Below are positions 1,081 through 52,314 of a stretch of DNA of 64,000 bases, piece after piece. The notes under the pieces are model-generated. The model saw only the letters and a program-made list of their open reading frames with translations, was not told where the DNA came from and searched no databases. Location: assembly GCA_010909165.1 (NCBI GenBank), contig MU008186.1, positions 558,001 through 622,000 on the forward strand, given 5' to 3'. Numbering within the stretch: position 1 is the stretch's first letter; every line of letters begins with the position of its first letter. The DNA is from Anthoceros angustus. Its lineage: Eukaryota; Plantae; Anthocerotophyta. A program made the translations under genes and the position numbers.

Positions 1081-1083
1081 TAA

Positions 1084-22544: not shown

Positions 22545-24360
22545 ATGGTTGAACTGCATACGGAAGCCAGCTCCGGTGACGGTGAATTCTCGGCTGTAGA
22601 CTGGGATGAGTACGTCTCCGTGGACTGCCAACGAGAGGTACTGTGCTGTTCTGAATGTTGTTCCAAAACCTGCCACAAGTGCTGGGATTTATGTGAGAAG
22701 GAGAATCAGTGCAATAGTAGTGAGTTTGGAATTCTGCTGTTGCTGGAGACCTGTTAGCTCTAGGGACTCATGGGAGGTGGAGAGTTTATGCAAGAAGGGA
22801 CAGGTAGATGAGGCACTGGGTATTCTGAAACAAGTGGATGCGTTTTTCAACGGTTGTCTCCACGCGATGCCTTCTCTTGGACAGCCATTGTCTCAGGCTA
22901 TAGTAACGCTGGACAATGTCGGGAGGCTCTCTCATGCTATGAGCAGGTGCAACAGGAAGGTGTTCAGCCCAACAACTACACATTTGTCAGCTTACTCAAA
23001 GCATGCAGCAGGTTAAAGGACCCGTTGGAGGCCAGACGAATGCATGCGGACGATGCTAACCTTGGGCTTGAGTTAGACGTTTTGTTGGGAGCACTTTGGT
23101 CAGCATGTACGCGAAGTGTGGGGCATGGTGGATGGTGAAAGGGCTTTTGATGCCTTGCCTAAACGGAATCTTGTGCCTTGAAATGCCGTAATTGCGGCTT
23201 ATGCTCAACAGGCCAAGGAGACAAGGCCTTGCAGATTTTTCGGAAAATGCAAGTGGAGGAAGTGAGGGCAGATGCAGCTGTTCTTCAAGCATGTGGGACC
23301 CTGTCCGAAATGGAGAAAAGCGTACTTGTAGGTGGTCAACTGGTGAAGGAGAAGACGCTGGAGCAGGGCAAGAAGATACATACTGAAGCTATTCAAGGGG
23401 TTTTGGATCAAATGTCTTTGTTGCTAACACTTTGGTAAGTATGCATGCAAAGTGTGGGAGCATTGTGGATGCGCAAAGGTGTTTGATAGTCTGGTAGAGC
23501 GCAATGTAGTGTGGTGGAATGCAACGATTGCAGCCTACGCTCAGCAGGACCAAGGAGAGAAAAGCCTTGCCTTGCAGATTTTGAACAGAGAAGCAAAGGT
23601 GAGGCCAGATACTAGGACCTTCGTCAGCGCTCTTTCAAGCATGTGGTGCCATTGCAGAGAATGAGGACAGCGTTATGGTGCTTGGGCGAAATGTCAAGGT
23701 CGTAACCCTGCAAAGAGGAGCTAATGGGACTGGTTCTGATGGAGATTTCTTCTTTAACAACAGTCTGGTTAGCCTGTATTCGAAGTGTGGAAGCATCACA
23801 GAGGCACGTCAGGTGTTTGATGCATTGTCCCAGCGCACTGTAGTATCATGGAATGCACTAATTGCAGGCTATGCTGCCCAACATGAAGGTGGAAACGCCT
23901 TAGAGATCTACCGGTAAATGCAGAAGCAAGGCATCAGGCCTGATGCGCGGACGTTTTGTAGGCGCTCTCCAAGCATGTGGCATGGTTGCAGACCAGGAGA
24001 AGAGTTCTCTGGTGGATGGGCAGTTTGTCCAGGTGGAGTCTTTGCTACAGGCAAAGGTGATACATGCTGAGGTTGTGAGCATGCATATATGGCCCTTGAA
24101 ATGGACATGTTTGTGGGTAACACTCTGGTTAGTAAGTATTCAAAGTGTGGGAGCGTCAAGGATGCAGAAGTACAAGAATTTGACAGATTGTCCAAGCGCA
24201 ATGAGGTGACGTGGACGCTCATGATTGCAGCTTATTCTCAGCAGGATCAAGGCGACAAGGCTCTACAACTGTACATCCAAATGCCAGAAGGCGTGAAGCC
24301 ACAGGAGTCTACATTTGTTTCTTGTCTTGGAAGCTTGTAGCAATACTGGGGCCTTAGAAA
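22545..24360 (+). pseudogene. PLS-class PPR gene, frameshifted and truncated by the transposon
   Basis: PRDAFSWTAIVSGYSNAGQCREALSCYEQVQQEGVQPNNYTFVSLLKAC plus further P/L/S motifs. No E/DYW end. 23282-24360 matches 1-1080. Confidence 0.9.
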
Positions 24361-27300
24361 TTAAACCTGTGTTCGAGTTCACCAGCATGTTATTGAGACT
24401 GGAGGCATTATTCCGGACTACTGATCGTTGCCCCACCCTGACGGTCTCTTACCGGAGTGGTCTACATTAGTGCAGCAAGTTATCAAGCTGCTGGCGTGCT
24501 CGACGCAGGCTCTTCAGACGATATCACAAAATTGTACAGTGCTGGCACTTGAATTGATCGGTGAGTACCTGCCCCATCTGGAAGTGGCTTCCACGACCGA
24601 ATTGGTTAATAGGGTGGGAGGCGTAGAGGCGTGGTAGCAGCAGCGGAGTAGTAGGCGTACCTGTCCCTTTGGCAAGGGCGCGGCGTGAAGGCTGTCTAAA
24701 AGCAACCTCGTGATGTTTGTTGGCTTGCTTCGTGAGCCGAGGTTGCTGCAACGAAAGACGGAGAACGTAAGTAAGCATGCCTAATGTAGGCCTGTAGGAG
24801 GAAGAGCCACCCATCTTGGACTGCTACATACCTCTCCAAAGGAGACGTGTATTGGTGGTACTGGGTGGTGTTCCGGCAGCTGCAGAAAGCGTTGGCCGTG
24901 AGGATGAGGCAGTTCTTGGGATTCTCATCGATCGGGTTCGTGGTCACTGCGCCTCCCAAGCCCTGCCTGCCGGGGCGCCACGGCCAAAGGAGAGCCAGGC
25001 CATTAGGCGACCAATCTCTGTACATCTCACAAACGGCGAATTACAAATGATAGCTTAACATGGATAGCTGGATTACAGCAATTGTGCCGTTAGGATCGTT
25101 GTGAAGATTGGGGTAGCTTAGGTACACATAAGTTCGCATGAATTTGTTAAACACCAAAATCCCAACCACATGGACAGAGATTAGGGCAGCACTATCCACA
25201 TCCTTGAGCACTCTACGGAAATGAGGCAACTCAATTTTCTTCTGGTCCATACCATCTATCGCAATCCCTATGTACTTGGCCTGCTGACCATGAGAGAGCT
25301 TGAAGAGGAGGGAACCGAGGTGACGTGGTAGGTGAACCCAGGGACTTCCACGACCGAATTGGTTAATAGGGTGGGAGAGGCGTAGAGGCGTGGTAGCAGC
25401 AGCGGAGTAGTAGGCGTACCTGTCCCTTTGGCAAGGGCGCTTAGCGTGAAGGCTGTCTAAAAGCAACCTCGTGATGTTTGTTGGCTTGCTTCGTGAGCCG
25501 AGGTTGCTGCAACGAAAGACGGAGAACGTAAGTAAGCATGCCTAATGTAGGCCTGTAGGAGGAAGAGCCACCCATCTTGGACTGTTACTACATACCTCTC
25601 CAAAGGAGACGTGTATTGGTGGTACCGGGTGGTGTTCCGGCAGCTGCAGAAAGCGTTGGCCGTGAGGATGAGGCAGTTCTTGGGATTCTCGCGATCGGGT
25701 TCGTGGTCACTGCGCCTCCCAAGCCCTGGGCGCCACGGCCAAAGGAGAGCCAGGCCATTAGGCGACCAATCTCTGTACATCTCACAAACGGCGAATTACA
25801 AATGATAGCTTAACATGGATAGCTGGATTACAGCAATTGTGCCGTTAGGATCGTTGTGAAGATTGGGGTAGCTTAGGTACACATAAGTTCGCATGAATTT
25901 GTTAAACACCAAAATCCCAACCACATGGACAGAGATTAGGGCAGCACTATCCACATCCTTGAGCACTCTACGGAAATGAGGCAACTCAATTTTCTTCCGT
26001 CCATACCATCTATCGCAATCCCTATGTAACGGTTGGCCAGGTAGAGTCAAGCTTGAAGAGGAGGGGCGAGGTGACGTGGTAGGGAACCCGGAGGGACTTC
26101 CGCGATGCTTCGCCATTTTCCCCGCGCTCCATCCGTTGTTGATCCCGTGATAATTGAGGAGTTCTCTGCTTTATCCGCACATACAAGGGCCACCATCAAG
26201 ACGCACTGCACAATGCAAGTGTTCCCGCATCTGGCCCAAAGTCATCTTCGTACAAATCCTAAGCCCAAAAGGCCTTAGGGTTTGCGCACACGCCTACCAA
26301 GACACACCACCCAATCACCGGACATCCCTGTTTATAGTGATGAGGTAGAGGATTCTGATTGTACCTTGCTCTATGTCGCTCCTCGCTTTTTATTTTAGCT
26401 TTTAATTTCTCACAGACATACGTAATCGAGAAGCGTTGGATCTTGGTATTTTAACAGACCTAAAGTGCCGTATCCACAACTTGCAAAATAGTCAGAACAT
26501 ACATGTGTGGTAATCGCTCTTGCTTGTTGTCTAGCATACTCAATGTAAATCTCCTCCTTTGTGAATGTATCAGTTGAATACCAGACAGTCTTTCCACATT
26601 TCCTTTGAAAACAAATCCATCCACATCACACTGCACTATACAGTAGGAATTTTACCAGCTGGATCGCGAAAACCTCACCCCTTTTGTACTGGTCCGAGCA
26701 TTCCACACCGAGTGCCCCAATGCAAAAACACGGCAAAATTCCCTCACACATACCGAAACCTTTCCATGTGGTAGCTTATTCAAATGCATCCACACACACG
26801 GTTCCACCGCATCAACTGTCTTGCAAATGCTGCCTCGCCCCCTTAGTCATCGAAAAGGCAAGCCACCGCCATGTCCCTTTGGCAAGGGCGCTTAGCGTGA
26901 AGGCTGTCTAAAAGCAACCTCGTGATGTTTGTTGGCTTGCTTCGTGAGCCGAGGTTGCTGCAACGAAAGACGGAGAACGTAAGTAAGCATGCCTAATGTA
27001 GGCCTGTAGGAGGAAGAGCCACCCATCTTGGACTGCTACTACATACCTCTCCAAAGGAGACGTGTATTGGTGGTACCGGGTGGTGTTCCGGCAGCTGCAG
27101 AAAGCGTTGGCCGTGAGGATGAGGCAGTTCTTGGGATTCTCGCGATCGGGTTCGTGGTCACTGCGCCTCCCAAGCCCTGGGCGCCACGGCCAAAGGAGAG
27201 CCAGGCCATTAGGCGACCAATCTCTGTACATCTCACAAACGGCGAATTACAAATGATAGCTTAACATGGATAGCTGGATTACAGCAATTGTGCCGTTAGG

Positions 27301-30300
27301 ATCGTTGTGAAGATTGGGGTAGCTTAGGTACACATAAGTTCGCATGAATTTGTTAAACACCAAAATCCCAACCACATGGACAGAGATTAGGGCAGCACTA
27401 TCCACATCCTTGAGCACTCTACGGAAATGAGGCAACTCAATTTTCTTCCGTCCATACCATCTATCGCAATCCCTATGTAACGGTTGGCCAGGTAGAGTCA
27501 AGCTTGAAGAGGAGGGGCGAGGTGACGTGGTAGGGAACCCGGAGGGACTTCCGCGATGCTTCGCCATTTTCCCGCCCATCCGTTGTTGATCCCGTGATAA
27601 TTGAGGAGTTCTCTGCTTCTATCCGCACATACAAGGGCCACCATCAAGACGCACCACGCCAATGCAAGTGTTCTGCGTGGCCCAAAGTCATCTTCCAAAT
27701 CCTAAGCCCAAAAGGCCTTAGGGTTTGCGCCGCCTGCTCTACCAAGACACCACCAATCACCGGACATCCCTGTTTAGTGATGAGGTAGAGGATTCGGATT
27801 GTACCTTGCTCTATGTCGTCCTCGCTTTTTATTTTAGCTTTTAATTTCTCACAGACAACATGCATAATCGAGAAGCGGTTGGATCTTGTATTTTAACACC
27901 TAAAGTGCCGTATCCACAACTTGCAAAATAGTAACATACATGTGTGGTAATCGCTCTTGCTTGTTGTCTAGCATACTCTATGTAAATCTCCTCCTTTGTG
28001 AATGTATCAGTTGAATACTCGTATTGGAGTCTTTCCACATTTCCTTTGAAAACAAATCCATCCACATCACACTGCACCATACAGTAGGAATTTTACCACT
28101 GGGATCGGAAAACCTCGTCCCTTTTGTACTGGTCCGAGCATTCGACGAGTGCCCCAATGCAAAAACACGGCAAAATTCCCTCACACATACCGAACCTTTC
28201 CATGTGGTAGCTTATTCGACCATCCGGTCACGACACACACGGTTTCCTCTTCAATCACATCAACTGTCTTGCAAATGCCTCCCGCTCCCCTTAGTCATCG
28301 GGCCAGCCGGAGCCTTGCCATGTGTCACTTTTCCTATGCACTTTCTCACTGACCCTCCTCAGTTGCACAAAGCACGACTTCTCGCCAAAACATTGTCCAC
28401 CTTAATCCTTGCAAGATGGTTCTTGGTGGAACACATAACCCCAAAAATGGACTGCAACTCCAACCCCTCGACTTAGGATTAGCAGGAGCAAGATTGCAAC
28501 CGCCAGAGGCCTCGTTCACCTCCTCTCCAAACAAAGGCAATCGGATCTCGTACATTTGGTCTCTCCACGCTGTAACCTCCTTGACCCACTCGCGAACTCC
28601 AAACCAAAATCGACGATGCCATGCACTTTCTCACCACCCGACCAAAGAACACTCTCTCGCCCGATTCGCGGTCTCGATTGTGGCTGCGGTGAAACACAAC
28701 GTTGAAAATACTCCTGCGACCCACACATGGATCCGCTGTAGGCGCCACCATGTCTTGTACAAACGTTGATCAAAATAACGGTGACCCTAATTATTGCCAC
28801 GAGAGACTTGGTGGTACACAACATTGTTTCGTTAAGCGGCAACGCGCAAGTTCCTATTTATCACAGATGTCACGGGTGCAAAGTCTAGAAGCCACGTAAT
28901 GCAAGAACAAACAAAGGACTAAACTCAAATTCCAATGAGCAGCCTGCTCTGCTGAGCAACAAGAAAACAAAATAGTGCCATCACCCAAACAAGTGCAGCG
29001 ATTTTTGCGTGATGGTTGCCGCCGGCGCTCGTTAGCCCGCCAACCAGAACCATCACGCATTCAACGAAGAGAAACAATTAGGAGGCATGAGGGCAATGCC
29101 CTACGGTTTGTCCACTGAAAGCATAGAATATGAGCCGTTTCTTATAGTCCCTAGGTAGCCCATTTCCTAGTACCCATTAAGATGATGGCGCTACTAACAC
29201 GACCAAAGTTCTAGCACATCAACATAATGCTCACATTATATTCTCACATGTTCACATAATGCTCACATGTGAACATAATGCTCACATGTGAACATAAGGT
29301 ATAATGTATCATAAGGTTAAGCTATGTATTGTTCACATGTGTACACCGCAAATAGAAAATATATAAGTTGCAAAAATTGAGAACGGAATTGTAAGAAGTG
29401 AGGTATTGTAGGTAATGGATGCAGTGCTTTGAGCGGATGTTGATTCCCTCTTGAGTACGGACTCGCTTCCCATTTCTTGGAGTGCAATTGAGATGTTCAT
29501 ATCGTCGTGCTTCTTATAAAGAGGAAGATTGGCGGCTTCTTATGACCGGAAGATTGACCGCAAGATTGACGGCTTCTTCGACGGGAAGATTGACCGCTTG
29601 CCTTAGATTGTAGGAGGTCATGTTTTGACAATCCTCGATTCCTATGCCCATGTCTCTTGCATCCAAGATAGGACCGTAATCTTGGTAACTCACATTCCTA
29701 TAACTCTTTATTTTGTACAAGAATTATAGGTTCTGGTCATCTCATTTGCAAGAACCTTCCTCATTCTGCTTACCGCTTGGACATTTATATATGATATGTA
29801 ATCTAAAAAAGTACCTATAATTATTCTAACTAATTTTACTTACTGCTCGAAATCACCCACTTACCTCATGATCCACCTACATATGTGCCAAGGAAACCGC
29901 CTTATAGGTGCAAAGAAAACCGCATGTCAAGCGGTTTCCTTTGTACATAAATGGATCTTGCTCCCATGTTTCAAATCCAACTGTTCTAGGTTTTGTCATG
30001 ATGTGGGGATATGGGCGTACATAGGTAGAAGATGGTAACATGGGGAGTTTGTGTTGCTCTTATAGAAACTCATGGTAATACAAGAACCGAAACTTTTGCG
30101 AAGCTGTAGCCGGTCCCGATCCCAAGTGCTTGAACAAGCGCGTAATGGCTTCATAGATGGCCTTTGCCTTGCATTCCTCAGGCTAAACGTGCTTCTAGTT
30201 TTGAGCTGGCGATCCAGCGGCTTACAACTATGTTATGTTCCTGGAACCAAGACACGGTCGATCGAGCTACCAGTGCGAGGTGCACGCCTTTCATCATCGG

Positions 30301-31222
30301 GCAACACCCTGCCGTTTGTCTGCCTCTATGTCTCACTCTCTGCTAGGATGGAGCTGGCCATTTGGGATGCTTGCGATTGAGGAGACGTGGTGATGAAGGG
30401 ACAATTAGGCAGCTCGGCCTGTCAACGAGATCATGGAATTCTGTGCGCAAGGGACAAACGCAGTCCATCGTCAGGCATTCCGTGGAGGAGCTGAGCAGGC
30501 GTGCACTGCGAAGCGTTGTGGAAGCATTGCAGTTCCTGGTGGAGCGGGAAAATGTGCTCCATCTTGTGCTCAAGCGGTGCATGGAGGAGACGGCTTTAGG
30601 GCTTGGGCACATTCACGGGCTAGGACACCTTGAGCAACAATGTCTTATTGGCTCGTCTGCATGTCGCCTATGAGTGTGGAGGCGTGAAGAACCGAAAGCA
30701 CTTGCAGCCTGGTGGGAGGACATTAGCAGAAGGCCTTCCGCAAACAAGTATTTGCCCTCTCTCCTATTGCCCTTCTCGCTACACAATAGCCTGTTGTTGT
30801 CTTTCAATGCCAGAAATGGAGAAAGAAGAAGCTTACGAAGATGTAGGAATGTGGGCCGTTCTAAATACTCCATTGTATAAACAAGGCTGAAACATCCATC
30901 TGGCGTCAGTTTATCCAATTGGTGCTATCCTGTGCAATTTCAACTGGTCCTCTTTAATATCCACTGCCAAGTGTGTCACTGCTGATTGATCCCGGTTTTT
31001 CTTCGCCTAATCTAGGTTCATTTGTCTTGCCTATGACTAGATTTCATGTAAGGCCGAATGTCCGTCGGGTGAGCTTTCTCTAGAACTTGTACCAATTTGG
31101 CACCATGGAGAGAAGCTAGAACTGAGGTCCCGCAGCTATCGTTGTCACACGGGTGTTTTGGAATATGTAGGTGCTTCCTTCCAATTCTGTAGATTCTGTT
31201 TCTGCCAATGGCACTTGGCTAC
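23282..31222. repeat. Segmental duplicate of 1-7190 with internal rearrangement
   Basis: Matching ORFs at offsets 23281 (171/23452, 808/24089) and 24154 (5360/29514, 5918/30072). Similarity ends after tggcacttggctacaactt at about 31222. Confidence 0.93.
24364..29100 (-). mobile_element. Second copy of the DGMDQ transposon, transposase region internally triplicated
   Basis: IAIDGMD(Q/G) motif at ~25250, ~26005 and ~27455. Jump-back junctions at 25345-25349 and 26872-26877. Confidence 0.65.
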
Positions 31223-31239
31223 AACTTGCTTCCGATTCC

Positions 31240-31841: not shown

Positions 31842-33602
31842 TGTGCGCTACCAAAGAGTAGCCGAAAGTGCTGGTCACAATGTGCTCGGCGGGAAGGCGG
31901 CCGACTAGACATGTTCTGAGACTTGTATCCAGCTCTCAGTGCCCGCTCTGTAATCAATTACAACAATTGGCCCGGATATGCGAATTGCGGCCGGATCTGG
32001 CGGTAAAGTCGTTAATTAGATTGCAAGGATCGAGGAGCCAGGAGGTTATGCAAAAGCGAAACATGTTTAGATATGGCAAAACATGGAATATTCTCATAAA
32101 TATGCTTTACTACTTGTTTTGCGGATGTGCCTTTGGAGCGAATGAAGGCTAAACTTGGCGATCGGGCATTGGATGATTTCCCATGCGAGTGGAATTCCAT
32201 GCGATCCGGCGATGTAAGTAGTTGGCTCTTGCACATCGTGACCCCACATCATACTACCTTCCTCCCCGCTGGAAGACCGATTTTGGTGCCAACTGGAGAT
32301 GGTGGATATATTGAGCGAGGACAAAGCGATGATTTGTCTCTTATCCCTCGTATTCAGCGTGAATCGGAGTGTCTCATCGTCGCAAGGTTCATTGAAGGTC
32401 AACCTTTGCTCCAACCTCACAGCCATCCTATGTTTCCACGAAGAACATACCGAGGTGACTAGTTGATGTCGCCTTCTTTCGACAATCCTTGATGCTTGCA
32501 GTCAATTATGTGCTCACCTAATGTAATACTTGCTAATATGTCCAATGTTCTCCTTGCTACAATGGGTTGTTTGCCACAGATGGGCCCTCAAAACAGGAAG
32601 CGGAGCAAAGGCGCCAAACCCGATGGAGCGCTAGCGGTGGAGAAAAAAACGGACCAGGCGGCAGGCCGGTGATTCACAAGGCCCCATGGAGACTATGACC
32701 AGTCCAGATCCGAAGGCATCGAAGATGCATACCCTGACAGCTATGAACCCGCGCCCCACGACCACGTCCCCAACTAGAGCAACTTTCCAAAGTCCTTACA
32801 AGCAAGCAGAAATCGACATGATCGGAACGATGCTTCAGGACAACTCTCCTTTCGATATATCGCACAGGAGTTGGACTATGCAACAACGTCCTACATGACG
32901 GTTGGTATTTCTGTACCTCTTGGGTGCAGCAGAAGCCTCTTCAAAGCCCTCATGTCTTGGTGCTATTTTGTTCACACAATTCGTGGAGAAGGATGACCAA
33001 GGGTATGTAATTTTTTTGTGCACGCTGAAGACCAGCCAGCTTCTAAAACTTGACCCCAATGTCGTCCGCGTCTACTCAGCTGTGATCAAGAATTTTGACA
33101 TCGGCTTGCCGGAGCGTCGTGAAGCTGCTGCAGGCTTGCGAAAAATGATGGGCACAGAGTTTTCCACAAGGTAATGCACCAAGTTTGTTTAGAAGGCATT
33201 AGGCAGGCTGCTGGTACGCTGTCGGATTCAGGTGTAAACCCACCCGTCGCCGCAGTGGGAGGTAGTGGATCATCGGCCGGTGAAAGGCAGCATGTCATGG
33301 CAAATCGACTTGACGGGAATTCGAAGCAACCAAGCAGTGCATCTGCCGGGAAGCATCTTGTAGATGGCGGGAATCATCTCACAAGGGCATCTACAGGAAA
33401 GCAACCTAGCAGTTTCTCAGCTGGGATGCAACCGAGCAGTGCACCTGCGGGAAAGCATCCCTGCAATGCCATGGTGGGGAAACATCCTAGCATTGCATCT
33501 GCTCAGAGGTCTGCAGTACAACCAATTGCAAATGATCGGCGGCATCGTCGGTTTCGTCGGCCCGATCGTCGTGCCGGGGCCGTCCGGGTTTTGACTGTGA
33601 GA

Positions 33603-35160
33603 CTTTGTGATTCTTCAAGGCTCTGAAGGAAGCTAGCTTGACCGGGTATGACGAGGATATGGAGAACGACGGTGAGGATACAGAGGACTATGCAGATGGC
33701 GTCCTACCCGCCGAGGAGGACGAAGATGATCAAGACGGCAAAGATGGGTCAGAAGCTGTGAAGGAGACCTGCGAGGCTAACGACAATGAGCATGACCTCG
33801 AGGTCCTGTCCCCACTACACGATTGTTCATAGCGGTCTTCAGGGGTTATGTTGGATCGCAGGAGGGTGCAGGCAGAGTCGCCGCCCGTGGAGAAGGCATC
33901 AAAGGCGGCGAGAGGAGGAGGGCGGAGATGGCAAACCAATCGATGAGAAGGCGCAGTTCATGTAGTGGCAAAGCCAAGAAGGCAAGGGCAAACGGGAGAA
34001 GCTTGCAATTGCAAGAGTCGAGGAGGAGGATGAACCGCTTCCCGTGTTTGTGGAGATTGCCAAGGATAGCGCGTGGCTGGCGATGACGAGGCTTGCTGCC
34101 ATCAAAGCAGATGCATGCCGAGACGTGGAAAGAGATGGTATAGCAATGAAGAGAGTGTGGGAGTCTACTCTGAAGCTGCCAATCAAGTGTTGCACTTCCA
34201 GGAATTGTACGGCCGGTGAGGAAGTTGGATCTCGCATGGGTAGAGGCTTTGATGCAAAAGATGAAGCATTGTCCCGGGTGGGTGGTGTGTTGCCCATGGT
34301 TGTGGTTGTGGATCGTGTGCATGATGGTGGAAAGAGGAGAGAGAGGAGGAGGCAAATTTCTCTCTCACATTGGGATGAGGCTTTAGGGTATACCTTCGTC
34401 CCTAGGAAGCTCCAGCCCCGGAAGGAGAGGAAGCTTTGTGATTCTTCAAGGCTGTATGGAAGCTAGCTTGACATGACGAGGATATGGAGAACGACGGTGA
34501 GGACAGAGGACTATGATGGCGCCCTACCCGCCGAGGAGGACGAAGATGATCAAGACGGTGAAGATGGCTCTGAAGGAGACTGCGAGGCTAATGACGATGA
34601 GCATGACCTCGAGGTCCCGCCCCACTGCATGATTGCTCATAGCGGTCTTCGTGGGTTTGTTGATCGCAGGAGGGTGCGCAGAGTCGCCGCCTGTGGGAAT
34701 GCATCAAAGGCGAGGAGGAGCCGGAGATGGCAAACCAATCGATGAGAAGGCGCAGTTCATGTAGTGGCAAAGCCAAGAAGGCAAGGGCAAACGGGAGAAG
34801 CTTGCAATGCAAAGCCGGAGGAGGATGAACCGCGTGTTTGTGGAGATTGCCATGATAGCGCAAGACGATGAACTCGCCATCAAAAGTATGTGGAGACGTG
34901 GAAAGAGATGGTATAGCAATGAAGAGATGATCGTCGCCAATCAAGGCAAGGAATTGTATGCAAGTGGTGAGGAAGTTGGACGTGATGGGTAGAGGCTTTG
35001 ATGCAAAAGATGAAGCATTGTGTGGCTGGTGTCTGCCATCTGGTGCGGCAAGATCGTATCATGATGGTGTAGAGAAGAGGAGGAGGATCACTGAGAGAGT
35101 GGAGGTATTATACTTCATCAGGTTAGGAAGCTCCACAAAGAGAAGGAGCAGAAGCTTTAG
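33603..35160. repeat. Diverged ~830 bp tandem duplication (acidic and basic coding blocks)
   Basis: ctttgtgattcttcaaggct...atgacgaggatatggagaacgacggtgagga at 33603 and 34434. Confidence 0.85.
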
Positions 35161-35711
35161 TGATGTAAAACGATCTTGTCACACCTAACTTAGACTAAGG
35201 GGAGTCAGTACATGGGCATACCCTTTGATCCGTCACGCTATCAAAGAAGACGCTGAGAATGAGATTACATTTTTCGTCTTAGGGGAAACCATTCCTTCAG
35301 GGCAAGGTCCATTGCCTCATCTGCATCACTAGTGGAAGAGTACAAGTGGATGGATGCATATGTGCTGGACTCACCGAGGACGAGATGAGGATCGTAGCCA
35401 CGGACCACAACACCATAGCGAGATGCCGGAAGACATTTACCTTCATGGACGAGTCGGCGGTGTCTCGGAGGTCGAAGGTTTGAAGTGTGGCGTGGATTGG
35501 AAGTTGATGTGTATGCATTAGGCAAGATCCCCAAGTGGGATGCGATAGCAGAAGGTTGATCACGCACGTGAATGACACCTTTGGATTATTGTGTGGCAAA
35601 GTTGGCGAAGAAGTGTGGAGGTATGTGGACGAGATTTTGAGAAGTGGGAATGCATCAAAGGGCGAGAGGAGGAGCCGGAGATGGCAAACCAATCGATGAG
35701 AAGGCGCAGTC

Positions 35712-37549
35712 CAAGAAGGCAAGGGCAAACGGGAGAAGCAATTGCAAAGAGTCGGAGGAGGATGAGCGGAGAGAAGGAGGAAAGAGAAGCTGCCGCCATC
35801 AATGGGAGACGAAAGAGATGGTATAGCAATGAAGAGAGTGTGGAGGTATGTGGACGAGATTTTGAGAAGTGGGAATGCATCAAATTGTACGCGTGGTGAT
35901 GTTGGATCTCGCATGGGTAGAGGCTTTGATGCAAGAATGCAAGTGTTGCATGGTTGTCGCGAAGGATCGTAGCGATCAAAGAGGAGAGAGAGGAGTGAAC
36001 TCTCTCACATAGATGAGGCTGAGGATTTATATCAAGTGGTAGGAAGCTGTTAGGAAGGAGGAAGCTTTAGTGATTAGTCAGCAAAAAATGATTGTCCCAA
36101 CTGTGTGTTGTACATGGTTTTAATTGTGATCCGTCACAATGTGCTACAAGAGAATTTTGACGTTGAGAAGGTGGATGGGGATTACATTTTTCGCCTTGGG
36201 GGAAACCATTCCTTCCGTGCAAGGTCCCTACTGCCTCATCTGCACTACCCAGTGGAAGAGTACAAGTGGATGGATGCATATGTGCTGGACTCACCGAGGA
36301 CGAGATGAGGATCGTAGCCACGGACCACAACACCATAGCGACGCCAAGACATTTACCTTCATGGACCGGTGCGCTACATCGTAAGTGAGGCCGCCCCTGA
36401 GGTCGAAGGTTTGAAGTGACGTGGATTGGAAGCTAGATGTGTATGCACGACGGTGATCCCCAAGTGGGATGCGCCCAAGCATGGCCCCAAGGTGCGTGAT
36501 CACCGTGGACAATAGGACACCGGATTATTGTGTGGCAAAGTTGACGAAGAAGTGTGGAGGTATGTGGACGAGATTTTGAGAAGTGGGAATGTAAGCAACC
36601 ACCGAGCAGATAGATGCCGAGCACTAGCAGTGACAAGAAGGCAAGGGCAAACGGGAGAAGCAATTGCAAAGAGTCGGAGGAGGATGAGCGGAGAGAAGGA
36701 GGAAAGAGAAGCTGCCGCCATCAATGGGAGACGAAAGAGATGGTATAGCAATGAAGAGAGTGTGGAGGTATGTGGACGAGATTTTGAGAAGTGGGAATGC
36801 ATCAAATTGTACGCGTGGTGATGTTGGATCTCGCATGGGTAGAGGCTTTGATGCAAGAATGCAAGTGTTGCATGGTTGTCGCGAAGGATCGTAGCGATCA
36901 AAGAGGAGAGAGAGGAGTGAACTCTCTCACATAGATGAGGCTGAGGATTTATATCAAGTGGTAGGAAGCTGTTAGGAAGGAGGAAGCTTTAGTGATTAGT
37001 CAGCAAAAAATGATTGTCCCAACTGTGTGTTGTACATGGTTTTAATTGTGATCCGTCACAATGTGCTACAAGAGAATTTTGACGTTGAGAAGGTGGATGG
37101 GGATTACATTTTTCGCCTTGGGGGAAACCATTCCTTCCGTGCAAGGTCCCTACTGCCTCATCTGCACTACCCAGTGGAAGAGTACAAGTGGATGGATGCA
37201 TATGTGCTGGACTCACCGAGGACGAGATGAGGATCGTAGCCACGGACCACAACACCATAGCGACGCCAAGACATTTACCTTCATGGACCGGTGCGCTACA
37301 TCGTAAGTGAGGCCGCCCCTGAGGTCGAAGGTTTGAAGTGACGTGGATTGGAAGCTAGATGTGTATGCACGACGGTGATCCCCAAGTGGGATGCGCCCAA
37401 GCATGGCCCCAAGGTGCGTGATCACCGTGGACAATAGGACACCGGATTATTGTGTGGCAAAGTTGACGAAGAAGTGTGGAGGTATGTGGACGAGATTTTG
37501 AGAAGTGGGAATGTAAGCAACCACCGAGCAGATAGATGCCGAGCACTAG
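35712..37549. repeat. 922 bp near-exact tandem duplication containing the ParB-like segment
   Basis: Identical ORFs at 36067/36989, 36105/37027 and 36139/37061. Confidence 0.92.
36105..36390 (+). pseudogene. ParB/Srx-like domain (copies also at ~35220-35450 and 37027-37310)
   Basis: DGDYIFRLGGNHSFRARSLL...WMDAYV, then after a frameshift AGLTEDEMRIVATDHN...KTFTFMDR. This fits the ParB-N pattern GxH(R)xxA ... LxxxExxxxAxxxN. Confidence 0.6.
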
Positions 37550-38202
37550 CAATAAACAAAGGCTACAAGGAAGTCGAAATGCAGCCGAGAGATCTTGTGG
37601 TCATCGATGTGAAGGAATCGGATGTTCCGTGAGGTGGAAGTGTTTTCGGTGTCGAGCACTCGGCGCAACAACAATTTGAAGAAGGCATGCATGAAGGTTT
37701 TGGCTGGAGAAATGAGCTTGAAGCAAATGCAAGAGTGGGTGGAGAAGGCCAAAAATTGAACCTCATTCACATCACCCTTGCGAAGAACTTGTGAGACTTT
37801 CCAGTTAGGGATCGATACCCTCAATACGACGGTGGAGCGGATCGCAACTTTCAACGGCATTCAAAAATATGGTAAGTGATATGGATAAGCAAGCCGGTGC
37901 ATGTGATATGTACCATACACAAATTTGCTTGTTGGCGCAGGGTTTGTTTCCACGTCTGACAGTTGGAACTTTGCCATTGCATCCAGCGGGCCAATGCCTG
38001 TCTCGAGTGGAGTGCACTCCCTGACAATTTCAAGGAACATGTTTTGAAAGCCAAAGCTTGGAGGATAATGGCAGATGAGCAGCGACAATTGTTGGAGGCC
38101 TCCAATTCCGAAAAGTTAAAGACTTTCAGGGATGAGAGAACTGCAGGTAGGTATAGTATGTGGCAACATCGTGCGGATGGCCCGTTCTAGAACCCCGTCC
38201 GT

Positions 38203-38768
38203 ATGATGATTACATTGGACTTGCCCCGAGGGTTGAATTTGGATGCAAACTCCAGGGAGTATGACACGCGGCTCAATCGTGAGGAATTTGAGAAGATCAT
38301 AATGACATTCCAGGCATCACAACGTCGAGGTTTTTCGAGTCGGTATTATTCATTCGATGATATGTCCATGGTTCGTGAAGTTTTGCTTGCGGCATGTAAA
38401 GGTGGTGTCATCACGCTTACACAAAACTAATGTGGCACCCTCCAGATAAGTCAGTATGATGCGGTGATTACATCACCAGGCGCAGCTCCTTAAAGCGGGA
38501 TTATGCCTCAAGATTTCTCCCTCAAAGGAGGATGTTATGAATGACTGCGGAGGGTTGACAACTTGCTTTCTTGAGAAGGTCATGGAACATAAGCTATGTT
38601 ACAACACAGATGATAGGGTGGTTTCCTACGAAGCCCATTAGATTGTTGAGGAAGTTGATTGAGCTGTACACAATGGAAGGCGAGTGGGTCCTAGATGGAT
38701 GTGCAAGATCTGGTTCGGGTATGGTAGCGACCCTCAAGTCGCAATGTCATTTCGATGACGTAGATCCC
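38203..38768 (+). pseudogene. Beta-class amino (N6A/N4C) DNA methyltransferase domain remnant
   Basis: ITLDLPRGLN at 38218 (motif IV position, DPPY-like), then LMWHP, then KPIRLLRKLIELYTMEGEWVLDGCARSGSGMVATLKS (38631-38768). The last matches motif X/I KPxxLLxxLIxxxTxxGxxVLDPFxGSGT; AGA is one base from GGA, giving CAGSGS. Confidence 0.72.
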
Positions 38769-40684
38769 AGCAAAGGTGCAATTCATTCATGGCTCAATCG
38801 ATGGACAAGCGCCAAGCGAGGAGGAGGAGGTGGGAGATGTTGGCGGGTATGCACCCAAGACGTGCGACAAAGAGCCCATGGTGAACACATCGCGGAGGCG
38901 AGGTTGTTTTGTGGGTCCGGCGGTGCAAGACAAAGAGGCTGCACAGTTGGAGGCGTGTCAGATCTACTTACGACTGGTGTTGTAGGACATGTGTCGACAA
39001 ATGCAGGGGAAGTTAGTGAGAAAGGCGCAGTGCACATTGGCGAGATGGCTGGAGAAGAGGGTTTTGCTGCAACATTGGGGGGGGCTGATGTAGAAGAGGT
39101 CCATCCCCTTGAGACGGCGACCGAGAAGTATGATGGCCAAATTGACTCTCCAGACAGCGCCTGGGTGGACAGCCAGAAAAATCTTATGGCATATGAATCT
39201 GAGATTGGTAGAGAGGTGTGAGGGCTAGGAAATCTGCAGACGACCAGTTTGGTTGCTTTTTGTGTTGGACTCCAAACATTGTGAGACAACTTGTGTTGTA
39301 GACAACGGCCCCCAAGTCTTGCACAACCACAGTGATAAAGGCTATTGTGTCCATGGTGTCCCATTGATCTAAGCTCGCTTGACCATTTTTTCATTCACGA
39401 TGGTCGCTTTCGCATGGTACAAACATCGGCGCACAATAGCCATCATCGATGCATGCATATCCTTCAATCGAACACCGGAAAGGGGAGCGAACTACGTCCG
39501 CCCAATCTACATGCACCGCACGTTGGCGACATTGGTGTGCAGGTTGTCCCCTGCGAGATTGAGGCGTGGAAGGCGGTAGTGGCACCCGATTCGAGCCTCA
39601 TCCGTGAAGTGTCGAGACCTTATCGAATTGCAAATCGCATATATGGCGGGCGCTTATAACCGAATAGCGAAATGCATTGCTATAAAATTCGGTCAACATA
39701 CACCGAAGTGCATTGTGGTGGAAAGCCATCATGGCGGGTGAATCGCGGACATGATGAATGCATTCATCATATGCATGTAAAGAGATGTCGACACGATGCA
39801 TGGAATGACCGCATTGACCCCGCAATTGTAAATAGATTCGCATGGTGTGTCCGAAGGCCAGCTACGAAGTTGAGATTTCATCAATTTCAATTGCAACCTC
39901 GGGCTGCACTAAAATGGATTCATACCATTCGCACATTTACCGGATGTCCGGGGTCATATAAGAACATTGCATTGTGCCTCGCTCCTTTTTTTCTAGTCAG
40001 TTTATGGTCGTGTAAACTCATTTTGTGGACATCTTTTTTATATCCATTATGTGCGGCCTATAAATTGCATGTATCTGTCTTCAAGAATTGGCAGTTGTTT
40101 TATGAGAACTTGGAGGAGTGTAGACCATGTGAAGGTCTTATTACCTTAAAACCAGTGAAATGCATGGTTTCATTCTTAACGTCACATCTTTATCATGCAA
40201 TTTTTTTCCTAAATTTTGAAAATTATGAAATTCAGGCTTTTTCGTTTCCAGGCCCCAAATTTCACCCCCTCAAAACCAGAGACGAGGAGCCGTCTCCAGG
40301 TCTTAGGAGACCTTGTTGAATCGGTTCAGGTGAAGACGTGGAAGGTACCGACAACGAAAGGAAGGAGGTCGTCGGGGAAGAGCTAGTGTATCAGAGGGAG
40401 AGCGAGTCGGAGCTACCACACCATGAGCGGGGTTTAAATCGAGTTGCAGGCCCGGGATCGCTCCGTCGTTGGAACTTTCGCAGTGGTGGATCCACCTCCA
40501 CAACAAGTGAGACAGAGAGTGAGGAAAGCGGAGTGGGCAATGGTGAATTTTCTGCATGGTCCGAGGATCTTGCAGAACGGCTTGATCGAATCAGTGTTCA
40601 ACTCACGACCTTGGGGAATTCATCTAGCGGGGATATCGCATCAACATCGTACCCTAGTCTGCTAAGACATACCGCAGGGCGCCG

Positions 40685-41548
40685 TTGATCAATTCACCGC
40701 AAAGAAGAGAAGGGAATGCGAGTACATCGAGATCCTTTGGGCTGAGCATCATGAGCGGAACCGGAGGACATGGAGGATTGCCACAACCCCACAGTCGCCA
40801 GCAATATGTCAAGTTTGGGGAGAAGAAGAAGGGCGACGATGCGGAAGCATTTGTCAAGACTTTTGAACATGTATCTCATGCCAATTTGGAGGATACGGTC
40901 GATGACCGGCTGCGTATCTTTCCTAGGCTGCTCAGGGGGCACGCTCAGCAGTGGTACAGCAGAACTTACGGTGCAAGTGCGCCAATGGATTGGGATGCTT
41001 TGAAAGTCGCGTTTCTGAATCGTTTTCGAGGACTCAGTTATGCACATCACACCCTAGCAAAATTGAGAACCCTCCGTAGGAAGAAGAGGGAATCCTTGTT
41101 CAATTATGTTGAACTATTCTACGGATACTTGGATCGAGTTCCGAAGTGTACGTCAGTGACCCCAGGAAACCCTCCCACATCCGGGTACTCACAGGAACAA
41201 GCGTTGGACTGGTTTGTGAGTGGGTTGTCTAGAAAGATGGAGGTACACTGCAGGCGCGGGACTAAAACGTTGGCTGGAGCAATCCGTTTGGCAGAAGAGT
41301 GGGGGTCAGCCGAGTTGGGAAGGAGGAGGAAAACGAGGCGGAGTCATAAGAAGAGAAAGGGGACCAGGAGGTCCAGCTCTTCCTCTTCTTCCTCATCCGC
41401 ATCCACCTCATCACCTTCTTCTAGAAGTGAGGAGGGTGGTACCCAGGAGAGCTCTACGACAGATGAGGAATCCGAGAAAGCTTACGAACGACGCATGCGG
41501 AAGGACTTGGAAAAGGTTAAGAAACGGGTGGAGGAAGCGGTAATCTAA
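40685..41548 (+). mobile_element. Ty3/gypsy-type gag (Retrotrans_gag), truncated, no pol
   Basis: 287 aa ORF with DAEAFVKTFE...RLRIFPRLLRGHAQQWY...DWDALKVAFLNRF...QKRESL-like and FVSGLS motifs; Ser/Lys-rich tail. Confidence 0.8.
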
Positions 41549-45497: not shown

Positions 45498-45570
45498 CGT
45501 CTAAAGATTTTCTTAGTACTTTTGAGGGGCATGCATTACAAGATGGACAGAGGTACATCACAAGTAGTTG

Positions 45571-45752
45571 TCTCAGTAAATAGGGTTTAACCCCGCCCTT
45601 GGGTTAATAAATTTAGGGTTATTTATATTTACGTAACTTAGGGTTACACAAACAGTTTTGTATATAAACACACCTTGCCTTTGATTAATTCATTCTTTAT
45701 TTTGTGCACTTGAGAGTTCTATGTACAAAAGCTTCCGCTTATAAAGTTTTCA
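45571..45752 (+). repeat. 5' LTR
   Basis: TC(TG variant)...CA termini, immediately followed by the PBS. Confidence 0.95.
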
Positions 45753-45966
45753 TGGTATCAGAGGAGAATACGATCTAGTGCTGTGATGCTGAATCTCTCA
45801 ATCGCACCTTGCACATAAGCTAGCTCACTCTATCTTAGAGTAGGCTATGTTGTGTGCAAAATGGATTGTAGGCCCTGCATGCTTAGCACTAGGTTAAATT
45901 ATTCTGGAACTAGTTCTGTCTTCTAATCAATAATGCAATTGAAAGTCACTAGAAATTCTCGTCGAT

Positions 45967-46542
45967 ATGACTCGTAGGAACTTCAATCGTCCTCAGCGGG
46001 CTGTTGGGAGTTTCTGCAATCATAGTGCTAGGCATCATACACCTAGTGAGAATTCAGATATCTATCGGGACGAGGCTGATTATCCATCCTCTACCCGGTC
46101 TCAAAGATTAGCTGAATTGATTTTTGAGTCACAGCATACTTCTCACCTTAACAGGAATCAGCGCAGAGCTGAAGACTGGGGGAGATCTGCTGCACATCCA
46201 CGAGAAATTTCAGTGTTAGAAGACAATCACACAATTCGGCACTTGATTTCCAGCCTTCGGACAGAATTCACTACAAGACTTTCAGTCCAGGAAGCAGCAA
46301 TTGCAGAATTGAATTCCAGCATCACAACGATTGGAGCCTTGGCCACAGCAATCCTGCAGCTGGTTCAGCGAGCGGACAATCACATCCTTGGAGAAAATAA
46401 TTGCTTGGCTGATGTTGGAGGGCGATTGGCCTTTTTGCACACACCAAGGTTGACATTGAACACACCGCTACTTTTCGAGGATTGGATTCAATTTACGCCG
46501 CTGGATGTTCTGTGTTGGAGGTTCAACGCGCCTCGTCAGTAA
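45967..46542 (+). CDS. Extra 191 aa ORF in the copia leader, unknown function, predicted amphipathic or coiled-coil segment
   Basis: Uninterrupted ATG-to-stop ORF between the PBS and gag; contains LRTEFTTRLSVQEAAIAELNSSITTIGALATAILQLVQ. Confidence 0.45.
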   Translation: MTRRNFNRPQRAVGSFCNHSARHHTPSENSDIYRDEADYPSSTRSQRLAELIFESQHTSHLNRNQRRAEDWGRSAAHPREISVLEDNHTIRHLISSLRTEFTTRLSVQEAAIAELNSSITTIGALATAILQLVQRADNHILGENNCLADVGGRLAFLHTPRLTLNTPLLFEDWIQFTPLDVLCWRFNAPRQ

Positions 46543-46895
46543 GGGAGGCAGATCCGAGGCGGCCCGATTGCCACGGATTCGGACTGGTTGGCGCCCAGCG
46601 TGTTTAGGCAAAATACAGCGCCTGTCGCAGTGATCACAACCGTTGTCATCATCTGACATGACGGTTGGCGCTACTTAACACCTGTCACCAAACGTTGCAT
46701 GTGAGGAGGCATTTTGCCCTAACTATAGCTTTTCGTATCACTTAAGTTGTGAATGGGTGTCACCCTAACGAAACGTTACTTGAGCATTTAATTACCTCTT
46801 CATGTCGTTTTGGTATGAGTCCGACAGTGATGTTGATGAATCTTCAGATGTTGAGGAGGACTTTCTACAGTCGCTAGCATCCCAATTTCCAGTGT

Positions 46896-49800
46896 TTGTT
46901 TTACCTGCATTTCTTCAGAACCAACCACCGATTGCTTGATGATCAGAAACAGTGTGCAGAAGAAATTGGATCTACTTACTCCGGTGAGTTCAAAGAAAGA
47001 GATAGGTTTGATGGGAAGCCTACTAGGTTCGAAAGCTGGAAAGCTCGAATGAAAGCAAATTTGAATGCACGGGATGTCTGGGAGTTTGTAGATGGTACAA
47101 TCCCTAATCCCTTTGCTGTTCCGTCAACTGCCACTCAACAACCCACAGCTGATGAGAAAGCCAAGTGGACAAAAGGAAACAAGATAGCATTTGCTATCCT
47201 CCTTAGTGGTCTAGACGAGGCAAGCGCGCTAGTGAATTTCTAGAGGCAGACCGGTTATGCGGAACCGCTTAGTTGATACTTACCAAGTCAAGAATGTTTG
47301 CACCTTGATTCATGTCCGAGAGCAGTTTCATAGTCTAAGGATGAAGGAAGGGGACCCTGTGGGAACCTATGTCACAAAGTTGAGGTACCTCCGGGCACAG
47401 CTGTCCGCGATGGGGGCCAAGACGACTGATGTGGAGATGGTTGCTCAACTGTTGACCGGCTTGCCTTCTTCCTATCAGACTTTTATCTCTGGGCAGAATG
47501 CTTCCTTGCGGGTTGCCTATCAAGCAGCAGCTAGTGGACAGCCTGCCAACTTGGACTTGAATGAGGTCATCGGCGCACTTCTGCAAGAGGAGCAAAGCCG
47601 ACATAAATCTGGTGGCAATCGCATGCGTGGAGATAAGGTCAACTTTGCTACGAAGGGCAAAGGGCCCTGGAAGGGGAAAGGAAATAAGAAGGGGAACTCA
47701 TCTCAGAATCAGCAATCCTCGGCGTGCACCGCCGCACCTAAAGCAACAAGGTAATTGCAATCGGTGTCAGCCGTCAGGGCTGGTCTGGCCGTAAAAGAAA
47801 GTTGGTGAAGCCAAGAAGGAGAGCAAACCTGAGGCACATGTTACTTCCAATGAGAAGACTCCCCAGCACAAACATAAGAGCAGCAGTTCTGTACTAACCG
47901 TGTGCTTGACCTCATACAGGGAAAACTCATCTTCATGGTTTGTTGATTCAGGTGCTACTGCACATGTCTGTAACAATCGCCAGCTGTTTTCCACCTTCCA
48001 CAAACAGAGCACACCACAATCAGTGTTTGTAGGTGACTCTAGAGGGGTAGAGGTCAAGGGCTGTGGAACTGTTGTGATACCTTTGCTTGGAGGTGTGTCC
48101 TTGCATTTAGAAGATGTCTTGTACGTGCCTGCCATGAGCAAAAATCTGTTGAGCATTAGGGCTATTGCACTAAGTCAGCGTTATGGCTTCCGTTTTGAGG
48201 CCAGTAAGTGTTACATTTATGAGTTAGATTGCCCTCATGACTATGTAGCAAAGGCTGTACTTGTGAATGACCTGTATCAACTTGTTACTGTCTCTAAGTC
48301 CAAGGCTAGGGCTCTAGTTGCTGCATCCTACGCACAAGCTAATCTCTGGCATGCTAGATTAGGACATGTTAACAAGTTTAAGCTCAATGTTATGTCCAAT
48401 TCAGACCTGTATAGGGAAAAACTTCCCTCTTGTTTCAAGCTTTTAGAGGCCTGTAGCTCCTGCATTTTGTCAAAGCAGAAGGAGTTGCCTTTCAAAAACA
48501 AAGCACCCACACGTGCTAAGGCCTTGCTGGAACTCATCCATGCCGATATAGCTGGGAAGATCCAGGTCAAGTCGTTAGGAGGGGCAGAATACTACCTAAC
48601 CTTGACCGATGATTTCTCACGTTATACATGGACATTTCCCCTCAAGTACAAGAGTGAAGCATATGAGCAAATTGTTTCCTGGATTCCTATGGTTCAGCGT
48701 CAGACAGGGCACTTGGTGAAGTGCTTTAGGACTGATAACGGTGGAGAATTCACTGGTCACAACTTTGATGAGTGTTGATGGAATTATCATGACTTTCAGT
48801 CCCTACACGCAGCGAAAAGCGGGTGGCGCAAGAACCCGGACAATCATGGGCATGACCAGGAGCATGCTGTCATATTCAGGACTACCAAAAACATACTGGG
48901 CAGAGGCTGCTGTTACTGCTACTTATCTCTTGAATCGCGTAGTGACGACAGCTCTACCAGGAAAGACTCCTTATGAGGCCTTCTGGGGCAGGAAGCCCAG
49001 CCTCTCACATTTAAAGGTGTTTGGCTCGCCTGCATTTGCTTTTATACCTGAGGCAAAAAGAAAAAAGTTAGATGATCGTTCCAGACAGCTGATATTTGTT
49101 GGGTATTCTGAAGAATCAAAGGCCTACAAATTGTTTGATCCAGTCACCTCGAAGATATCCTTGTCCCGAAGTGCTACCTTTAAAGAGCTTGTTTTTCCAC
49201 GGACTTCTAAAGATGCAAGTGGGCATGCTGACAGTTCGAGTGATTTACCTCTTGTTGATCCATCTTCTCTTGAGGTGCCAGTGTCATATCCCGTATCTGA
49301 CGGTGAGACTTTAGATGCTGGTGATTCTGGTGATACTGTAGTTGTCGATGGGAACCCTGCCCCAGGTGGTCAGCCTGGACTTCATCTTCAAAACCCTAAT
49401 CTGCAGGCAGCAGCACAAGATCAGTTTGCATCTGATTCAGAACTAGAAGAGAATGATGCTAATCATTCAGGGCATGATGCTGGTTTGCCTCACTCTGGAT
49501 CAGATGTGGACACTCACATTTCTGAGGATGCTGCAAGTTTGGACAGTTACGGCGAATTGGAACCTGATGGTTTTGCAGATGTGCAACCTGATTTAGCTCA
49601 TACAGATGAGGAGGGAGCACCTCCTGCCCCTGCAGTGGGGGATACATCTCCCAGATACCCTGTCCGTGAACGTCGTGCGCGGGCAGATTGGCTGGAACCT
49701 CCCTATCAGCCTGTCGATTTTCGTCGACCCTCTGCACATGTGTCTGATGTTCACGTACCCGAAGTCAGGCTTGATCCTCAGAGCTACAAGGAAGCACTCG

Positions 49801-51356
49801 AGGGGCCTGATGGCAAGCATTGGCGAATGTCCATTGATGACGAATACAACTCCTTGGTCAAAAATAACACTTGGGAATTGGCCGATCTGCCTCCAGGACG
49901 CAAGCCCATTACCTGTAAGTGGGTTTTCAAAACGAAGTTAAAGGCAGATGGCACTATTGCAAGGTATAAGTCACGATTGGTGGCACGCGGTTTTTCACAA
50001 ATACCTGGTGTCGATTATGGAGACACGTTTTCTCCTGTTGTGAAGCCACCTTCTGTTCGGATTTTACTTGCAGTGGCTGCTCAGTTTGATCTCGAATTGC
50101 ATCAGATGGATGTGTGCACGGCTTTTCTTCATGGCGAGCTTGAAGAAGTGTTGTGCATGGTCCAGCCTGAAGGCTTTGTCGATAAGCAATTTCCTGACAA
50201 GGTATGCAAATTGTTAAAGACAATTTATGGGCTCAAGCAGAGCCCTCGTGCCTGGTACAAAAGGATTATGAAATTTCTCAAGCAACATGGCTTTGTCCAG
50301 TCCCCAGCAGATTCAAACGTATTTTACCTTGCGTCTGATGGCTTCTTCGTCATCTTGGCCCTTTACGTTGATGATGCGATTTTGTTGAGCAATCACCTTG
50401 AGCAGATGGATCAGGTGAAAGCTCTCCTCAGATCTGAATTTGAGATGACAGATCAAGGGCCCCTTGCCTTCTGTCTTGGCATCCAGATCCTTCGAGACAG
50501 GTCACAAGGCACTATGATTCTGCATCAGACGAAGTATATAAAAGAGATCCTCAAGCGTTTTAACATGGATTCTGCTAAACCTGTTACCACACCAACAGCA
50601 GTGGGGGAAAAGCTGACCTTTGAGCAGTCATCACAAGATGCTGTTGATGAGGACTTGATGACTGGAGTTCCATATGCCGAGGCTGTAGGATGCTTGATCT
50701 TCCTTGCCAACTGGACACGTCCAGACATTAGTTATGCTGTCAGCATTGTTTCACAGTTCTTGAAGGCACCTGGCAGAGCACACTGGGGTGCTGTTAAGCG
50801 CATTTATCGCTATCTACGAGGCACCTTGTAGTATGGTTTACACTACACCAGGACGAGTGAGAGGGAGCTTACCTTATCTGCCTTTTCTGATGCCGATTGG
50901 GCATCTGATGTGGACACAAGGAGCCTCTCTGCACATGTTTTTCTCTTGGCTCAAGGTGCTGTAAATTGGTCTTGTAAGAAACAGACCTCGCTGGCCTTGT
51001 CTTCGACTGAAGCTGAGTATAAGTCCCTGACAGATGCGTGTAAGGAGTTAGAGTGGGAGCGGCAATTCCTTGATGCTGTTCACTTACCTCAAAAAGGGCC
51101 AACTTTGCTGCAGTGTGACAACATGTCAGCTATTGCCTTGGTCTCTAACCCACGTTTCCATGCGAGGACCAAGCATATCGAGCTTTACCATCACTACATT
51201 CGAGATGTGGCTGAAAGAGGCATAGTCAAAGTGCAATATGTCAGCACAGATAGAAATACTGTTGACATTCTTACAAAGGGCTTGAGCAAGCCAAAGCATT
51301 ATCAACACCTTTCAGCCCTGGGGCTGAGGGTATTCTCAATGCCTTCTACAACCTAA
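46896..51356 (+). pseudogene. Copia gag-pol (gag, protease, integrase, RT, RNase H) with several frameshifts and stops
   Basis: WKARMKANL gag, WFVDSGATAHV protease, LWHARLGH...C..C, FRTDNGGEF integrase, YKSRLVARGFSQ/LYVDDAIL RT and CDNMSAI...HARTKHI RNase H. Confidence 0.95.
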
Positions 51357-51615
51357 AAATGTGTCACCAACCTCTGGCAGCAGAGTTGACAGCTGACAGG
51401 AAGATAGCATGTACTCGCAGGGACTGCTCTACAGTCTACATTGCAGGATCCGCTGTGGACAGGGCATGTTCCCGTGCTGTCTTCTTCTGATGCCTGTAGG
51501 TTGAGGACAACACATAGCACTTGGCAGTGTCAGTGGATGAAGCCTCTCTGTTAGACCTAATCGTGAGACTGTCAAGGTGGCTTATGGGTTGTGGAAAATT
51601 CACAGACTTACCACT

Positions 51616-52260: not shown

Positions 52261-52314
52261 GGCCCGCTTTACGAGATGCGTTGTCTTTAACCCTGCGGAC
52301 GGGTTAAGAGGGAG

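Follow-up and report, generated by a model that had tools for sequence, protein, structure and literature searches.

The 64,000-nucleotide (nt) stretch of Anthoceros angustus DNA analyzed here (GCA_010909165.1, contig MU008186.1, positions 558,001 to 622,000 of the forward strand; hereafter, the window) contains a broken plus-strand gene at about 32788-38892. This gene is very likely a dead, rearranged copy of an accessory gene of a DUF7869/Sola1-type cut-and-paste DNA transposon, and the ancestral protein would have carried a conserved, probably ParB-like domain followed by a beta-class amino-methyltransferase fold. Homology to and collinearity with intact relatives, the assignment of the methyltransferase fold, the pseudogene status of the window copy, and purifying selection elsewhere in the family are demonstrated. 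A preliminary description of the window, made from the sequence alone, had proposed a decayed, intron-bearing, prokaryote-type beta-class amino-methyltransferase gene from a mobile element, and this core proposal was borne out. The gene range that it gave (35220-38770) was too small: tblastn and tblastx comparisons with relatives show that the copy is collinear over its full extent with the whole gene in L001, a 9,089-nt genomic contig from sequencing run SRR33208241 that is cut at both ends.

The methyltransferase domain predicted by the preliminary description was recovered by several kinds of comparison. A 216-amino-acid (aa) open reading frame (ORF) of the window (38571-39221) matched the Pfam family N6_N4_Mtase (PF01555) at profile positions 164-195 with E = 0.013 and 15.9 bits, below the Pfam cutoff of 26.7 bits. 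The first 70 residues of this ORF fell among N6_N4_Mtase clusters in the ESM atlas (0.93, 190 shared features). An exhaustive phmmer search of 1.84 billion representative proteins with the same ORF returned five hits. Two of these are ordinary bacterial-type N6_N4 methylases matched at motifs X and I (P0001, E = 1.3e-6; P0005, E = 2.9e-4), and the other three, P0002, P0003, and P0004, are true eukaryotic relatives of the window gene. PF01555 matched P0002, P0003, P0004, and the L001 ORF with 56.4, 30.0, 50.1, and 43.3 bits, respectively, all above the cutoff. When the window was aligned with these relatives, the blocks ITLDLPRGLNLD..., FDDMSMVREVLLAACKGG, and KPIRLL...VLDGC..SGSG occupied conserved columns.

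The family profile was also compared by hhalign with 22 nonredundant phage ParB-methylases. The whole methyltransferase domain aligned with a probability of 93.5% (E = 2.2e-7, 206 columns) in a register that placed DLPR on DPPY and CVWEK on CIWKK, with motifs X and I aligned. The C-terminal half alone gave E = 2.5e-8, while the N-terminal half alone gave P = 0.013 in the correct register and outscored 30 of 30 column-shuffled controls. The order of motifs is that of beta-class enzymes (IV, target recognition, X, I), as had been claimed: DLPRG starts at 38218 and KP...VLDGCARSGSG at 38631, and the same order is found in P0003, P0004, and the phage enzymes. The positions reported earlier for these motifs were exact, with the KP..L...LI block starting at 38631 within KPIRLLRKLIELYTMEGEWVLDGCARSGS (38631-38768) and GGNHSFRA starting at 36198 and again at 37120. 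Judged by these alignments, the assignment of a beta-class N6_N4_Mtase fold or family domain to this gene family holds.

The copy in the window is dead. No frame gives an intact gene across the region, which holds only short ORFs split by stops and frameshifts, and a deletion and tandem duplications have further rearranged it. All of its parts lie on the plus strand. The most upstream is a conserved ORF or exon with one in-frame stop (32788-33099; tblastn with L001 ORF 2528-3175, residues 73-177, E = 8.7e-10), whose counterparts in L001 and L004 are separated from the downstream ParB-like ORF by about 200 nt. It is followed at 33603-35021 by the acidic N-terminal region of the ParB-like protein, which occurs twice in tandem, in diverged copies at 33603-34272 and 34434-35021 that are 82.6% identical to each other by self-blastn and that match residues 49-254 of the 488-aa ORF of L001 and residues 148-275 of the protein P0007 by tblastn.

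The ParB-like core follows at 35263-37629 as three tandem copies with stops (repeat families D1 and D3; self-blastn; tblastn) and a period of 920-922 nt, matching residues 263-471 of the L001 protein and 258-341 of P0007. The 922-bp duplication was missed by Tandem Repeats Finder because the longest period that it considers is 500. Each copy contains GNHS..RA and then AGLTEDEMRIVATDHN; in the copy nearest the 5' end, the first motif is a GNHS variant at about 35281. AGLTEDEMRIVATDHN follows each GNHS-type motif in a different reading frame, and one frameshift between the two is common to all three copies, so the break predates the duplication.

A linker exon (NNNLKKACMKVLAGE...FKNM; 37667-37871), interrupted by a stop and by frameshifts, is bounded on its 3' side by a GTAAGT donor (tblastn with L001 ORF 4696-5082, E = 1e-10). 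Homology to relatives ends at FKN[IM], exactly at the GTAAGT at 37872, and picks up after the CAG at 37986, which delimits a probable intron of 115 nt (gtaagt...cag, 37872-37986). This intron is supported because the gene is interrupted at the identical position in L001 and L002, for about 390 and 194 nt, respectively. The next exon (LPDNFKEHVLKAKAW...; 37987-38133) precedes the methyltransferase core and was identified by tblastn with P0003 residues 9-70 and L001 ORF 5388-5744. Of the two introns that had been suggested, the one at 37872 thus stood and the one near 38148 was rejected: the ORF of P0003 continues through this point without a break and includes about 28 residues absent from the window, so the gap is better read as a deletion.

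The methyltransferase itself (38206-38892) is broken into four frame-shifted pieces, and roughly 28 codons that come before motif IV in relatives are missing. The N-terminal half (38206-38427) includes the motif IV counterpart DLPRG at 38218-38232 and was delimited by alignment, tblastn with P0003 and P0004, and hhalign. A second piece (..FLEKVMEHKLCYNTDDRVVS; 38549-38626) matches P0004 residues 225-251 and P0002 residues 72-88 by tblastn in a frame that differs from that of the next piece. Motifs X and I (KPIRLL...VLDGCARSGSG...DVDP; 38631-38810) form the third, which is the segment hit by PF01555, phmmer, the ESM atlas, and hhalign, and a C-terminal tail (38737-38892) is readable in another frame only (tblastn with P0003 residues 284-338, E = 6e-5).

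L001 indicates the kind of element from which such a gene comes. On this contig, a minus-strand ORF of 619 aa with a DUF7869 match (E = 1.7e-49) lies head-to-head with the plus-strand ParB-like/methyltransferase gene. DUF7869 clusters have predicted structures similar to those of ISAzo13-type DDE transposases. The window retains four minus-strand remnants of the DUF7869 ORF, each limited to its initial ~60 codons, at 25071-25259 (IAIDGMDQKKIELP...), 25826-25999, 27277-27450, and 1795-1982; all four were detected by tblastn with L001 ORF 56-1915 (E = 1e-19 to 7e-14). Remnant on the left and minus strand, gene on the right and plus strand, is the order and divergent orientation seen in L001. The link of remnant and gene to a single insertion at this locus is likely.

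The same two-gene design has been described for Sola1-1_Ec32, a giant Sola1 DNA transposon (21.5 kb) of the brown alga Ectocarpus with a ParB-like plus DNA methyltransferase accessory gene (Genome Biol 2025, PMC12477816), and Repbase Sola1-1_PPa was the best match of the Ectocarpus transposase (PMC12477816 supplement). GHTHxQIDQxFSxF and DGxxQ..P are common to the transposase of L001, the window remnant, and the Sola1-1_Ec32 transposase; GHTHIQIDQIFSCF of Sola1-1_Ec32 has its counterpart in GHTHDQIDQMFSRF of L001, and MMDGANQSNFVVP in AIDGMDQKKIELP of the window. These motifs, on which the Sola1 label partly rests, were compared by eye and not by a phylogeny.

The window also contains a direct repeat of 7-8 kb, of which the copies (1-7193 and 23282-31227) are 92-98% identical and 16 kb apart. 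The second copy has an internal tandem triplication of 1.45 kb, with one 60-codon transposase remnant per unit. The direct repeat may be a segmental duplication or a pair of giant LTR-like (long terminal repeat) repeats.

Run SRR33208241 contains at least five lineages of the ParB-like/methyltransferase gene (L001-L005) that are 26-34% apart at the DNA level, indicating that the gene family is old and diverse in that organism.

Several observations weigh against the interpretation given above, one of general bearing being that every close relative stems from a single sequencing run. The others concern the identity of the N-terminal domain and the nature of the carrier. The upstream block, which the preliminary description had called ParB/Srx-like, is a genuine conserved domain of the same gene, being 51-57% identical to P0007 and collinear with the 488-aa ORF of L001, and it is the assignment to ParB that lacks statistical support. 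At E <= 1, Pfam ParB_N (PF02195) matched neither the window pieces nor L001 or P0007, and a PHROGs search produced no ParB hit for the upstream block. The family profile did not match any sequence of a solved structure, hhalign did not match it to the ParB part of the phage ParB-methylases, and a hidden Markov model (HMM) of phage ParB domains did not match the N-terminal domain. When bacterial genomes were scanned for a more diverse set of ParB domains, the sequences recovered were all close relatives of the phage protein, with identities of 60% or above. AlphaFold models of the ParB-like and methyltransferase domains had predicted local distance difference test (pLDDT) scores of 40 and 38, respectively, both unusable, and Foldseek returned only noise matches for the former. 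The alignments behind these models were shallow because homologue searches found no candidate protein with the window ORF as the seed and one relative only with the ParB region of L001. Furthermore, the family sequence GGNHS(F/W)(R/Q)AR keeps the glycine pair and the alanine of the ParB GxxR box (e.g., GGHQR or GERR) and has serine at the arginine position. The domain could accordingly be a eukaryotic module unrelated to the ParB/Srx fold, with a DNA-binding or structural role, in which the G-x-H..A and ..EDE....N patterns occur by chance. We consider this somewhat unlikely, since ParB_N clusters are listed at 0.92 for the domain in the ESM atlas and its best neighbour there, a eukaryotic cluster (0.96, 198 shared features), has a predicted structure that aligns to ParB_N proteins with template modeling (TM) scores of 0.58-0.65. 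By eye, the spacing in GGNHS...EDEMRGVATDHN (L.EDE....A...N) also resembles that in phage ParB domains (GGHQR...EDEKALNIALN; L.KEDEKALNIALN), and a ParB-like annotation has been given to the Ectocarpus protein, which has the same architecture (PMC12477816). From language-model neighbours, motif layout, and published annotation, ParB-likeness of the N-terminal domain is plausible, and we regard it as probable.

As to the carrier, the fragment might instead be cargo or debris captured in a large LTR-type repeat or in another DNA transposon and not a Sola1 insertion at this position. Just 60 transposase codons are left, 5.3-7.7 kb upstream of the gene. They sit in the 7-8 kb direct repeat, whose first copy (1-7193) is not followed by the gene, and therefore need not belong to the insertion that brought the gene. 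No inverted repeat of at least 18 nt that could represent terminal inverted repeats (TIRs), and no target-site duplication, which in Sola1 elements is 4 bp, was found bracketing 22-41 kb, and the region is flanked by a Ty3-type gag ORF (40685-41548) and a Ty1/copia element (about 45570-52496). Against this stand the order and divergent orientation of remnant and gene, which match both L001 and the published Ectocarpus element, and we consider a different carrier very unlikely. An origin by bacterial or phage contamination, or by very recent horizontal transfer, would fit the abundance of phage ParB-methylase fusions (at least 545 confirmed relatives of one such protein occur on viral contigs). 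This explanation is extremely improbable and was dismissed because the intron position is conserved, the gene is flanked by eukaryotic retrotransposons, the best bacterial matches reach only 37-44 bits at motifs X and I only, and the relatives are linked to a eukaryotic DUF7869 transposase. A dead accessory gene of a DUF7869/Sola1-type transposon thus remains the preferred reading.

For the ParB-like domain (residues 215-350 of the ORF at L001 3375-4841), the nearest language-model neighbours are unnamed eukaryotic clusters (Cnidaria and Porifera) and fungal DUF3723, a hint that domains of this kind may form a wider eukaryotic family.

DLPR had been called degenerate in the preliminary description, a view that its conservation contradicts. 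DLPRG is identical in the window, P0003, P0004, and L001, four lineages whose proteins are only 45-50% identical overall, which identifies it from the alignment as a maintained feature of the family and not a product of decay in the window copy. Active amino-methyltransferases are defined by the motif (D/N/S)PP(Y/F/W). In all four sequences the first proline of this motif is leucine and the aromatic residue is arginine. Motif I, DGC(A/S)(R/G)SGSG, retains the glycine loop with cysteine in place of the phenylalanine of FxGxG. Catalytic competence is uncertain because DLPR departs from (D/N/S)PP(Y/F/W). The methyltransferase gene is under purifying selection in the relatives: nonsynonymous differences per site (pN) were 0.26-0.38 versus synonymous differences (pS) of 0.66-0.78, and the corresponding corrected ratio (dN/dS), where computable, was about 0.15-0.27. 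The role of the protein is maintained, and the conserved DLPR argues for a retained, possibly noncanonical function in intact copies.

An unstranded cluster of short palindromes centred on ATGCAT (39449-39801) lies some 0.6 kb beyond the 3' end of the window gene. Six ATGCAT sequences occur there in 350 nt, at 39449-39796, compared to 45 in the whole 64 kb, and some lie within longer palindromes, e.g., ATGAATGCATTCAT. These could be candidate binding sites or subterminal repeats of the element. Five TGCGCA palindromes occur within 250 nt downstream of the methyltransferase gene in L002 (4115-4363), which suggests that every subfamily has its own downstream palindrome cluster.

In intact elements, the N-terminal domain would bind element DNA, perhaps at such palindromes, and the C-terminal domain would bind S-adenosylmethionine (AdoMet) and then methylate element DNA to N6-methyladenine (6mA) or N4-methylcytosine (4mC). 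Alternatively, because the tetrapeptide is DLPR and not (D/N/S)PP(Y/F/W), the C-terminal domain might be a noncatalytic module that binds DNA and AdoMet. The strongest version of the first possibility is that intact land-plant members are active DNA amino-methyltransferases that the ParB-like domain targets to the palindrome arrays of their own transposon, which would make this a eukaryotic transposon that writes 6mA or 4mC on itself; from the sequence features described here, we regard this as quite unlikely. The window copy cannot have any role in DNA binding or methylation.

Four known systems resemble the window family to different degrees. Sola1-1_Ec32 shares the two-gene design, the placement of accessory gene and transposase on opposite strands, the combination of a ParB-like domain with an N4C/N6A-type methyltransferase, and the transposase motifs. 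It differs in its brown algal host, whereas the host of the window family is apparently a land plant, and in its size, with the whole element spanning 21.5 kb, whereas L001 fits both genes in about 7 kb of a contig cut at both ends. The window copy differs further in being dead and without transposase and ends, and the accessory proteins are likened by architecture and annotation. Fusions of ParB and N6_N4 domains in phages and prophages, e.g., Streptococcus phage phi-SgaBSJ27_rum (QGJ85250.1), share the order of domains and the beta-class order of motifs. They have DPPY and DPFxGSG where the window family has DLPR and DGCxGSG, and their ParB part has no sequence similarity to the window family detectable by hhalign or HMM; the eukaryotic genes, unlike those of phages, have introns and a long acidic N terminus.

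Marchantia DN4MT1a/b and bdelloid N4CMT are likewise prokaryote-type amino-methyltransferases in a eukaryotic nuclear genome. DN4MT1 is a host gene with high expression in late sperm development; its motif is TSPPY, as is typical of 4mC enzymes. Compared by motif and description, the window family differs in having DLPR, an extra N-terminal domain, and a transposon context. In red algae, the Plavaka accessory genes PAG2 and PAG3 (described with the Bostrychia genome, bioRxiv 10.1101/2025.02.11.637652) are similar in that inverted-repeat arrays adjoin the ParB gene. Their carrier is a Plavaka/EnSpm element, however, and ParB and the methylase have separate fusion partners, a 2-oxoglutarate (2OG) oxygenase and a SET domain, respectively, instead of being joined together.

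Measured against these systems, the window copy is an ordinary fossil of a design already published for a brown alga (2025). The residual interest lies with the family, in its conserved DLPR, the selection acting on it, its apparent land-plant host, and its downstream palindromes, and the family raises the question of whether transposon-borne bacterial-type amino-methyltransferases mark eukaryotic DNA.

Other repeats were identified in the window to the right and left of the gene. The Ty3-type ORF mentioned above carries a Retrotrans_gag domain. The Ty1/copia retrotransposon (45570-52496) lies between LTR-like direct repeats of 183 nt that start at 45570 and 52314 and are 98% identical, and its near-intact pol (47900-50831) contains Pol_BBD, gag_pre-integrs, rve, SH3_retrovirus, and RVT_2 domains. 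Tandem arrays were found at 17556-19451, with three copies of a 628- to 632-nt unit that are 97-98% identical, and at 52753-54143, with several diverged copies of a unit of roughly 360-400 nt.

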